A DNA stretch of 63,872 bases, counting the filler, from Olpidium bornovanus S191 (taxonomy: Eukaryota > Fungi > Olpidiomycota): the NCBI GenBank assembly GCA_017911155.1. It is 30 parts of 30 records of this genome, joined end to end, with 100 filler letters (N's around TTAATTAATTAA, not from the genome) between each part and the next. Parts side by side here need not be neighbours in the genome. Positions count along the whole stretch, not along the records: positions 11,334 to 13,713 come from JAEFCI010006023.1; 29 more parts are not named here. One strand, 5' to 3'. This document shows positions 11,334 to 13,813 of the stretch, piece after piece; position 1 is the first letter of the stretch; every line of letters starts with the position of its first letter. The translations under genes and the position numbers were made by a program. A model generated the notes under the pieces. It did no database searches. It was not told where the DNA came from and saw only the letters and a program-made list of their open reading frames with translations.

Positions 11334-11791
11334 AAGCCGTAAAAGTTTGAGAAATTGCAGCCTCTTCTTCGTTTTTCGAGAAACGCATTTACATAGTTTC
11401 TTGGGTCACATTTTGCGCTGTCCAATAAAAGTTGCAAAAAATACGAAGCGCCTTTTATTGAGCCATACAGGGTGCTCAGGCAGGAGGGGAAAGAGAACTA
11501 CACGCTCAAACTTTTCGCACAATTCTGTCTCCATCCAATCTTCTACGTTTCTGTCCTCAGGCTCTCGTCAATCCCAGCGTCAATCAAAAAATCAACTAGC
11601 CAGTTAAAGATAAAAATGACTAGTGTGAGGTAGAGAAAATCTCCAGGAAATGAATGCGCCGAGGCAGATGGCAGTACCTCGTCCTCTGGTTGGGCTTCGA
11701 CGCCACCTACGCTATGTGGGAGGACGTCAAAGTGTTAGTTAATGCCCAAAAATCAGTTGACATGTTCAAGGCTTCGACAACCTCACCTTGA
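11334..11791 (+). mobile_element. Degenerate Ty3/gypsy (chromovirus-type) integrase C-terminus: GPY/F motif plus chromodomain
   Basis: From 11439 it reads KYEAPFIEPYRVLRQEGKENYTLKLFAQFCLHPIFYVSVLR (GPY/F region). From 11624 it reads CEVEKISRK*MRRGRWQYLVLWLGFDATYAMWEDVKVLVNAQKSVDMFK (chromodomain), ending at TGA 11789-11791. It carries frameshifts and stops and is not captured by the ORF track. Confidence 0.88.
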
Positions 11792-11792
11792 T

Positions 11793-13030
11793 TTAGACCA
11801 AAGAGGAGTTGGCCAATCGCGCGTCCTGGTCGGCATCTGTCACGTCCTCGGGGATTTCCGTGTGATCATCTCCCCCAGGCTCAGAGTGCCTGAGGTTACC
11901 ATCATTACTCGAAAGCTCAGAGCACCTTGAACCAGATGCCGGCCTGAATCCCCTTGTCATGACAAACAACCAAAACCGCTGCGGGATGGCATGCGCTATC
12001 GTCAGGCGCCCCTCATGGTTTTCCGGAAAGTCCATGACGGCGGTGCCGTGATGCTCTCGATTGGCGAAGAAGAAGAGCATGTTGTCTTCCAAAGCGAAAT
12101 AGACGCCGCGCGTCGGAAAGATGAACTTGCCGACGGTAATGCTCGGTGCCTCCATGCAGTATGCAAGGCACAGGTGGTTGGTGTCGTTATCAATGTGCAT
12201 GCGTGGCTGCAAAAGAAGTATGCAAGCGGTAGTAGAGCGATATACCGGCCACCGGGCCCAAGACCCATTTAAATATGAAAAAGATTTTCTACCTGGTTAT
12301 TGTGAGCCGCGCACATTGGCGGCGGCGCATTAGGAAATGCCCAGTGGAGTTTGGCCAACTCGTCACTTAGGCACAAGCCGTGCGCCTCCACATAGGCGAG
12401 GAACTCACGCACGGGCCCGTGCTGTGCCGCACAGTTTGCCCGCATGACCAACCCCTCAGGCTCTTTACGAAGGGCGGGCTTGGCGAGGAATTGATGGAGC
12501 TCCCGCACCCCGCGAGGGCTTGCCAAGCCGAACCCTGCCATTTTCCCGCTGGTGATGTGCTGCCGGCAAGCGCTCTGACTCACCTCCAGCTGCGAGGCGA
12601 GGAGGACCCAACAACGGCAAAACCAGCGGTTGGAGGTTGATGTTGCTGCAAAGTTGTGGCGAAAGCCCCTGACCACAGCCATCGTCGCCTCCTCAAAGAT
12701 CTAACACTCGCGGATGCGGCGCCCTGGGTCGAGGTTTTTCAGGCCTTCCAGAGAGACGCACTCAGCTGACGGCGGGGTGCTGGACAAGCTCAAGATGAAT
12801 TTCCCCAGGCATCGAGAACGAAGAGCTGCATTGTGCAAAAGGACAAAACATACTGGAGTCCCTCGCCGACGCGTAACGGGTGCCTTCGGGCACCCAGGTT
12901 TTGCCCATGACCCCAGGCCCCGCACACCCTTGGAAAACGAACTGCACAATGGCCCAGCAGGGCGCCATGCCTTGCCCAGACAGGGGGATCAGGCGGCCAC
13001 CAGACAGACGCCTCAGCCCAAGCTTGCAAC
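11793..13030 (-). pseudogene. TET/JBP-family 2OG-Fe(II) dioxygenase; catalytic half intact, N-terminal half with a frameshift and a stop
   Basis: Motifs: SGKMAGFG, HxD (MHIDND, 12197-12189), FPTRGVYFALEDNMLFFFANREHHGT (distal His at ~12050) and NHEGRLTIA (Arg at ~12008). A probable phase-0 intron at 12207-12292 (CAG|GTAGAA...TTGCAG|CCA) joins ORFs 12269-12682 and 11793-12212. In-frame TAG at 12701-12703; frameshift at ~12803. Confidence 0.78.
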
Positions 13031-13813
13031 CATTCACGGTCGGCGAGGAGGACCTTGAGAGCCCCGAGCAGCGTGACGCCCTCTTAGACTTGAAAGAGGA
13101 TCTGCGCGTGCGACATGTTTAAAAATTAGCTTCCCTGCCGAAGGCAAATCGGGCTCTGGGGATGCGAGTTGGCCACGACGGCCCATGCCCCCTTCCAACG
13201 AAGCTCGCAGACCATACCTGTGCTGTGGCACGGCCCTCAATCCCGACCGTCGCCCAACGCCAAGGAGGAAGCCACGGAAGGCGGCGGCGGGCGGGAGGCG
13301 GAGGCGGAGGAAAGACGGCCCAGGGGCCCGGGGCCCGACCAATAGAATAGTCCCACCCAGAGCCCGCCAATAGAAGAGCCCCCCCCCCCCTCCCACAATA
13401 ACGCCACATGCGGGAATCCACCGCCAACCACATTCCCCCCCTTGGTAAAGAGACTGCCCCCGCGCGCAACTGCGCGCGAGCTTGGAGACCCTCGTGGGGA
13501 CCACGACCGCGAGGGAAAGCAACCGCGTCGGCGGACGCGAGATCAAGGAACGACTCGGACGACGTCCTGCCCCGCCGCTCAAACTCGACGGGCATGAATA
13601 GCCCGTCCCGCTCCGTAGCCTCGTCCCCTCACCAACTCGAACTTAACCGTACTCGTAACCCTCGTCACCTCACCTGTCGTCTTTCGCGCAGACCTGACGA
13701 GGAGAATATAATANNNNNNNNNNNNNNNNNNNNNNNNNNNNNNNNNNNNNNNNNNNNTTAATTAATTAANNNNNNNNNNNNNNNNNNNNNNNNNNNNNNN
13801 NNNNNNNNNNNNN

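Follow-up and report, generated by a model that had tools for sequence, protein, structure and literature searches.

Antisense accessory genes are a familiar feature of long terminal repeat (LTR) retroelements, as in the antisense open reading frames (ORFs) of plant gypsy elements and in HBZ of human T-lymphotropic virus 1 (HTLV-1). Genes of the TET/JBP family are carried by fungal DNA transposons of the Kyakuja-Dileera-Zisupton, hAT, Harbinger, IS3EU, EnSpm, Plavaka and Helitron groups (Kojima 2025, PMC12730594), and TET/JBP-carrying fungal DNA transposons are also described in Iyer 2014, as cited in PMC12477816. The same survey, of December 2025, reports TET/JBP genes to be absent from retrotransposons and offers reasons for this absence (Kojima, PMC12730594). 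In dinoflagellates and charophytes, retrotransposons have acquired cytosine methyltransferases (de Mendoza 2018, PMC5890265). Here we describe a locus of Olpidium bornovanus S191 that probably joins these themes: a decayed copy of a chromodomain Ty3/gypsy retrotransposon family in which a TET/JBP-like dioxygenase gene lies on the opposite strand, directly behind pol. The locus is the piece 11334-13713 (JAEFCI010006023.1, with zero N inside the piece) of a 63,872-nt stretch of DNA, which is the window that was analyzed. A literature search found no TET-carrying retrotransposon, in agreement with the December 2025 survey (PMC12730594) and with the first-pass annotation of this DNA, whose author knew of no described TET-carrying LTR retrotransposon.

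A stop-to-stop junction shared by diverged copies

On the plus strand of the piece, the tail of a gypsy pol gene ends in TGA at 11789-11791. On the minus strand, the TET-like gene ends in TAA at 11793-11795, read as TTA on the plus strand, and a single base (11792) parts the two stops. Both the stop coordinates and this tail-to-tail spacing had been given correctly in the first-pass annotation. A phmmer search with the last exon of the TET-like gene against 1.84 billion representatives recovered only 13 relatives, whose contigs were examined. The tail-to-tail junction is present at all eight sequenced loci whose contig passes the 3′ end of the gene: three O. bornovanus metagenome-assembled genome (MAG) contigs (L001-L003, from the S191 assembly, JAEFCI), one contig of another NCBI genome (L008), and four metagenome or SRA assemblies, L004 being a metagenome contig and L005 and L006 two SRA contigs. 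The partner of the TET-like gene in this clade, at the eight sequenced loci, is a gypsy pol and not a DDE or HUH transposase.

One of these loci, L003, shares 84% nucleotide identity with the piece over 11468-13218, uninterrupted across 11792. L001, L002, L004, L005/L006 and L008 are also collinear with the piece, their TET-like gene ending against a chromodomain gene on the opposite strand, and gene tables for the contigs of two further relatives (P0006 and P0007) list a convergent gene that abuts the TET-like gene. Contigs of four public runs were placed on the piece; runs X1 and X2 each contain about 30 contigs of 82-100% likeness to it, together with the contig of a diverged paralogue that stays collinear through both the pol tail and the TET-like gene. 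Multiple divergent copies with the same junction, which had been proposed as a test of the association, therefore exist, and their TET-like proteins are 39 to 85% identical. An alignment-based search of JGI metagenome contigs found no relative.

A chimeric join near 11792, raised as a possible undoing of the association when the locus was first annotated, is excluded by the unbroken match to L003. An assembly artifact would suit the shortness of this contig, which comes from a fragmented assembly, and the small number of near-identical contigs that cover 11734-11813. The join is nevertheless crossed by L003 and other independent assemblies, record 11 of run X4 spans 11787-11990 with one mismatch, and an X1 contig joins 11678-11711 to 11787 onward, so that a chimera retains practically no probability.

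The plus-strand coding DNA of the piece is the integrase tail alone. As first annotated, it comprises an integrase GPY/F module followed by a chromodomain, and both have Pfam matches above cut-off: SH3_Tf2-1 over 11397-11630 (E 1.5e-7) and Chromo over 11654-11788 (E 2.3e-6). The GPY/F motif is degenerate and reads 'EPY'. In a tblastn comparison, the SH3 module is 44% identical to the intact pol of L005, and the chromodomain aligns with those of L005 and L008. Further in-frame stops at 11394-96 and 11597-99 add to those within the chromodomain (Table 1).

One arrangement unlike that of the family was seen at L012:1221-2300, probably left over from nesting or rearrangement: a TET-like fragment (P0008) leads straight into an integrase zinc finger and core region encoded on the same strand.

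Intact copies place the gene inside the element

The full order of protease, reverse transcriptase, RNase H and integrase (PR-RT-RH-IN) is found in L005 and L008. L005 encodes an uninterrupted 910-amino-acid pol with reverse transcriptase, RNase H, integrase zinc finger and core, SH3 and Chromo domains, and L008 contains gag, a 1173-amino-acid pol (PR, RT, RH, IN) and the TET-like gene. The L008 gag, at 4507-5409, matches the Pfam families Retrotrans_gag (3.9e-14), Ty3_capsid (2.4e-12) and zf-CCHC (3e-4). In both of these intact copies, the stop of pol and the stop of the TET-like gene overlap by 4 bp, so that no LTR fits between the two genes. No second copy of the TET-like gene precedes gag, and the gene is therefore not a component of the LTR; taken together with the 4-bp overlap, this means that the gene must lie inside the element.

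Upstream of the L008 gag, the sequence runs from GGGGAGGG to TGTCAC...GTTACA and then to TGGTAGC. It reads as a polypurine tract (PPT), one LTR of ~374 bp and a primer-binding site (PBS), with TGGTAGC being what we take to be a match to the initiator tRNA (tRNA-iMet-like). The hoped-for intact copy flanked by LTRs and a target-site duplication has thus been found in part: full pol in L005 and L008 and gag in L008 are present, but no LTR pair or target-site duplication was seen, and no TET-bearing contig contains a repeat pair that could represent the two LTRs.

In the piece itself, a purine-rich candidate PPT occupies the last bases and would, if genuine, put the 3′ LTR just past the end of the piece. 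An X2 contig that continues beyond 13703 shows purines and then TGTTCC, and a similar pattern of PPT followed by TGT is present in L008 and in L011, a related element described below. No clean purine run followed by TG was found within 13100-13713 of the piece, in L007 or in L003. The break in homology at 13218/13219 was considered as the start of an LTR and dropped: it falls on a splice donor, and the contigs that seemed to mark a boundary resemble spliced transcripts of a paralogue.

The L008 contig also contains two gag-pol stretches of 3369 bp (1510-4878 and 6318-9686) that are 100% identical and separated by 4808 bp. The second, which has neither the integrase C-terminus nor the TET-like gene, is linked by ~416 bp to the PPT and LTR in front of the gag of the first. 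This duplicate could be a tandem copy, an internally deleted copy or a misassembly.

The two genes could also be imagined as a fixed host pair, in which a TET-like gene and a domesticated gene of gag-pol origin are conserved as immobile neighbors. Purifying selection on both genes (see below) and the lack of a visible LTR pair or target-site duplication would be consistent with this idea. Such a pair is nevertheless very unlikely, given several diverged copies inside the Olpidium MAG alone, the ~30 contigs of 82-100% likeness in each of X1 and X2, and the two identical 3.4-kb L008 copies with gag, PR, RT, RH, IN and PPT, LTR and PBS signatures.

Purifying selection and late decay

Between L005 and L008, the ratio of nonsynonymous to synonymous divergence (Ka/Ks) is 0.14 and 0.07 for the two exons of the TET-like gene and 0.07 for pol, while Ks is ~1 to 1.6 for both exons and for pol; the comparison of the two genes at synonymous sites is that of this one intact pair. 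Both the TET-like gene and pol are under purifying selection in L005 and L008, with similar synonymous divergence. Between Olpidium-type copies, Ka/Ks of the TET-like exons is 0.09-0.16, and the gene appears to be kept functional across the family.

These values also bear on chance nesting, in which a TET-like gene of Kyakuja-Dileera-Zisupton, hAT or host origin merely came to abut a gypsy fragment in a repeat graveyard. The piece is decayed on both strands and shows no LTR, and the TET-like fragment of L012 beside an unrelated integrase piece illustrates that nesting occurs. This explanation is nevertheless largely refuted and highly improbable: the stop-to-stop junction recurs at eight loci with 39-85% protein identity and in intact copies of separate sample origin, the two genes have similar Ks, and repeated sampling of one locus is excluded by the divergence of the loci and their different flanks.

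The piece and L003 differ from the rest of the family, with Ka/Ks of 0.4-0.7, and are late, relaxed copies. The piece (11565-11653) and L003 (2927-3015) share a frame change after HPIFYVSVLR and the TGA at 11651-53. Because the frame change and stop in the pol tail are common to both, their sub-lineage multiplied after pol had been inactivated, and it spread either as non-autonomous copies or by duplication. The copy in the piece can make neither protein in full. The earlier reading of stops and frameshifts in both genes is accordingly right in that both are broken, but part of the apparent frameshift in the TET-like gene is a 1-nt indel combined with alternative splicing.

The cargo resembles TET/JBP dioxygenases

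The last coding exon of the minus-strand gene contains 137 open codons (12206-11796) and the features of a TET/JBP-like enzyme, namely an HxD...H triad and a downstream arginine, which read HIDND, HHGT and RLTIAHAIP in the piece. Residues G24, N40, F45, G52 and T53 (P0005 numbering) are invariant across 14 sequences, and most, though not all, of the members that cover the triad His and Asp retain them. As the triad is HxD, the gene is not of the PE type, which has HxE.

Among solved structures, a profile of the last exon gave one real, weak match, to CMD1 of Chlamydomonas reinhardtii (7cy4, E 0.0015), an enzyme that uses ascorbate as co-substrate. The alignment covers ~55 residues from just after HxD to the second His (GGEFV.P..G..F......F.AN..VHGT), and P0007 and P0010, when searched singly against the PDB, match CMD1 alone (E 0.08 and 0.13). 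Family members match PF20515 (2OG-FeII_Oxy_6, a Tet-like family) or PF12851 (Tet_JBP) with E values of 6e-5 to 0.04, each time in one and the same segment of the profile, and language-model neighbors are Basidiomycota clusters that carry one or the other of these domains. On these sequence likenesses, the cargo very probably belongs to the TET/JBP family.

It is unlikely, by comparison, that the cargo is real but of another kind, for example a protein or RNA 2-oxoglutarate oxygenase or a DNA-binding remnant, with another fold or no catalysis. Several results would fit this alternative. All Pfam TET matches are below threshold: Tet_JBP reaches 12.5 bits (E 0.087) on the piece exon alone, and the best matches in the family are 23.6 bits against a cut-off of 27 for P0008 and 18.9 against 34.9 for P0010. 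Neither PF12851 nor PF20515 reached its gathering score, the products scanned being half-genes of a single exon. A half-domain AlphaFold2 model of the last exon alone, built on the 14-sequence alignment, had a pLDDT of 55, and Foldseek against the PDB gave no fold match. A profile of the upstream exon found no match in the PDB, phmmer with each piece exon against the PDB returned chance matches only, and an atlas feature search on P0014 was uninformative. Against this stand the position of CMD1 as sole or top PDB match, over the core from HxD to His, whether the profile or either of two single members is the query; the conservation of HxD, HGT and the downstream Arg under purifying selection; and a relative within an hAT transposon, as is known for fungal TET/JBP genes. 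The minus-strand TET/JBP dioxygenase of the first-pass annotation is thus upheld by its motifs and by the weak CMD1 match, but not by Tet_JBP at threshold.

CMD1 attaches a glyceryl group to 5-methylcytosine (5mC) instead of oxidizing it (PMC12730594). The chemistry of the cargo could be TET-like oxidation, CMD1-like glyceryl transfer, or action on 6-methyladenine or thymine.

Exons, introns and transcripts of the antisense gene

Features of the piece are collected in Table 1. The placed contigs of the four runs serve as splicing data. The intron directly before the HxD exon, already proposed in the first-pass annotation, is skipped by near-identical contigs in two runs (X1 record 2 and X2 record 7, each aligned segment of which has 2-6 mismatches). 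Its position is kept in the eight gypsy-linked loci read there and in hAT-linked relatives (L001-L005 and L007-L010).

Table 1. Coordinates of pol and antisense-gene features in the piece 11334-13713
Feature	Position	Strand	Remarks
Integrase C-terminal SH3 (GPY/F) module, Ty3/gypsy pol	11397..11573	+	decayed; frame change near 11570
Chromodomain closing pol	11603..11791	+	in-frame stops 11621-23 and 11651-53; pol stop TGA 11789-11791
3′ untranslated part of antisense transcript	11562..11792	-	crosses chromodomain and SH3 coding DNA
Last coding exon, TET/JBP-like gene	11793..12206	-	open; stop TAA 11795-11793; HxD, HGT and R..A.S/A.P motifs
Intron directly before HxD exon	12207..12292	-	86 nt, GT..AG
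Upstream coding exon, TET-like gene	12293..13101	-	in-frame stops 12703-12701 and 13086-13084; 1-nt length difference after 12909
Intron near 5′ end of antisense transcript	13102..13217	-	116 nt, GT..AG; joint 13101 to 13218 in X1 record 2
Upstream exon of antisense transcript, minimum extent	13218..13304	-	87 letters of X1 record 2 beyond the joint
Candidate polypurine tract	13696..13713	+	purine-rich; last bases of the piece

The gene is longer than the first-pass annotation assumed. Its upstream exon is homologous to the intact P0014 (270 amino acids with a Met start, from an SRA assembly) and to L004; by the homology to P0014, coding in the piece reaches ~13101, and a 116-nt intron and a further upstream exon follow. 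Homology to L003 in blastn stops at 13218. X1 and X2 contigs that cover 12909, two per run, have one extra base after this position relative to the piece, and the interval 12853-12780 (74 nt) is spliced out in one contig only, as an alternative or facultative intron. The 1-nt difference and the facultative interval together explain the apparent frameshift. Even when the 1-nt difference is allowed for, two premature stops remain in the piece, at 13086-13084 and 12703-12701, the latter in place of a Trp conserved in P0014 and L004. The HxD...H triad is intact in this copy, yet these stops lie upstream of it.

Two further GT..AG intervals, 11786-11712 and 11677-11596, lie in the 3′ untranslated part and are known from joints in an X1 contig of low depth (3.1). 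The splice sites of all five skipped intervals were checked, and each interval runs from GT to AG when read on the minus strand. This suggests, presuming that X1 and X2 are RNA, that the antisense gene is transcribed from the minus strand and spliced. The transcript extends upstream to at least 13304 and continues through the pol tail. Over 11562-11792, RNAs from the two strands of the element would overlap, a possible source of double-stranded RNA.

Relatives on other elements

A distant relative of the cargo, P0016 (~31% identical), lies tail to tail with an hAT transposase (L009:3004-5898 and L010:755-2110), which in L009 matches Dimer_Tnp_hAT (4.4e-23) and a ZBED RNase-like domain. The view that TET/JBP relatives travel as passengers of DNA transposons, given in the first-pass annotation, is borne out by this neighbor. 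P0016 has an intron at the position of the intron in the gypsy-borne genes. Their shared position ties the hAT and retroelement TET-like genes together, bears on the movement of cargo between transposon classes, and hints at an exchange between a DNA transposon and a retrotransposon.

The carrier has few close relatives of its own. In a search of 5.8 billion proteins, the nearest relatives of the L008 pol are metagenome proteins that are only 43-45% identical. The best-scoring named relatives are chromoviruses of the charophyte alga Closterium at ~35%, which places this gypsy lineage in rather an isolated position among annotated genomes.

An ENA metagenome scaffold, L011 (region 5980-7300), contains a sister chromovirus whose pol is 45% identical to that of L008. 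Its post-pol slot is filled by a 259-amino-acid antisense ORF with no Pfam match and no TET-like similarity. The contig wraps, with 1-80 equal to 7640-7719, and gives the order pol, antisense ORF, PPT, LTR of ~150 bp and PBS, the last three reading AGGGGGGG, then TGTAATG...ATTACA, then TGGTAGC. This wrap-around order makes the antisense slot internal to the L011 element. As the ORF in the slot is unrelated to the TET-like gene, the antisense slot may be older than the capture of TET.

A model of the element and its cargo

The piece is likely a dead copy of a chromodomain Ty3/gypsy family that carries, in the interval between pol and the 3′ LTR, an antisense gene for a TET/JBP-like (CMD1-like) Fe(II) dioxygenase. 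The encoded protein would be about 400 residues long. Capture of the gene probably took place at the level of genomic DNA, with a TET-carrying DNA transposon as the likely donor; the distant homolog with the same intron position adjoins an hAT transposase. Sense genomic RNA would ignore antisense splice sites, and because these sites go unrecognized in sense RNA, the intron would be copied intact in each round of retrotransposition. Antisense intron reporters follow the same logic. The antisense mRNA would start beyond 13304, towards or within the 3′ LTR, and would be spliced and translated into the dioxygenase.

Chromoviral chromodomains tether integration to H3K9-methylated chromatin. Here, the chromodomain could steer new copies into methylated heterochromatin, where the enzyme might oxidize or otherwise modify 5mC on the element copies and thereby delay silencing or methylation-linked mutation. 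Our full proposal is that a chromodomain gypsy lineage of early-diverging or root-associated fungi carries an active 5mC-modifying enzyme, acquired with its intron from a DNA transposon, kept in antisense so that the intron survives, and driven from the 3′ end of the element. We consider this proposal evenly balanced between being right and wrong. If true, this would be the first case of a retroelement that delivers DNA-demethylation or base-modification activity to heterochromatin targeted by its own chromodomain.

Several observations weigh against these readings, in addition to the failed domain and structure searches described above. No LTR is visible in the piece, where a candidate PPT in the last bases is the only such signal, and no copy with both LTRs and a target-site duplication was seen among the family contigs. 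Across copies, the pairwise identity of the TET-like exon is only loosely correlated with that of the pol tail (Pearson 0.49, Spearman 0.35, p 0.13), since decayed copies distort the pol tail. L003 (2381-2395) reads HIS, not HID, having lost the Asp of HxD, and the second His is missing in P0009 (YPGT for HGT) and in P0013; by the L003 and P0009 changes, some copies are catalytically dead. The backbone of the TET tree is unresolved, so that it demonstrates neither a single capture nor a donor. X1 and X2 were only guessed to be RNA, a guess suggested by their intron-less contigs. The identity of the host is uncertain, as the Olpidium assembly was binned from cucumber-root washings that were not axenic.

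A gypsy lineage that keeps a TET-like gene would extend the counter-silencing strategy of DNA transposons to RNA-copied elements, and it would provide a naturally occurring case of an antisense cargo gene with an intron. The pairing of a chromatin reader with a putative 5mC modifier also makes a testable system for how a retroelement lives in methylated heterochromatin. Intact copies suitable for expression exist in the L005, L007 and L008 types.

Comparison with known systems

Like the fungal TET/JBP DNA transposons, this family has its own TET/JBP-like dioxygenase next to a mobility gene, presumably against methylation-based silencing. In contrast to them, the carrier here is an LTR retrotransposon, which multiplies through RNA, and its TET-like gene is oriented antisense to the element. 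No solved structure other than CMD1, a 5mC-modifying member of the TET/JBP family, gives a real sequence match, but CMD1 is a host gene, whereas the cargo here rides an element.

The cytosine methyltransferases (DNMTs) on dinoflagellate and charophyte retrotransposons are reportedly carried in sense. The present cargo is, by contrast, separate, antisense and intron-containing. Both cases unite a retroelement with an enzyme of the DNA-methylation system, which is a writer in the DNMT-carrying retrotransposons (PMC5890265) and would be a 5mC modifier or eraser here. In common with fungal and plant chromoviruses (Tcn1-like, PMC2864245), the lineage has the order PR-RT-RH-IN and an integrase that ends in GPY/F-SH3 and a chromodomain; it differs from them in the antisense gene slot after pol.

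The plant gypsy antisense ORFs and HBZ of HTLV-1 resemble the cargo in being extra minus-strand genes between pol (env) and the 3′ LTR that are transcribed towards pol and spliced. The cargo described here differs in having clear relatives on DNA transposons, and to our knowledge none of these other antisense genes encodes a DNA-base dioxygenase. TET/JBP genes on DNA transposons, DNMTs on retrotransposons and antisense ORFs in LTR elements are all already known; the combination described here had not been reported.

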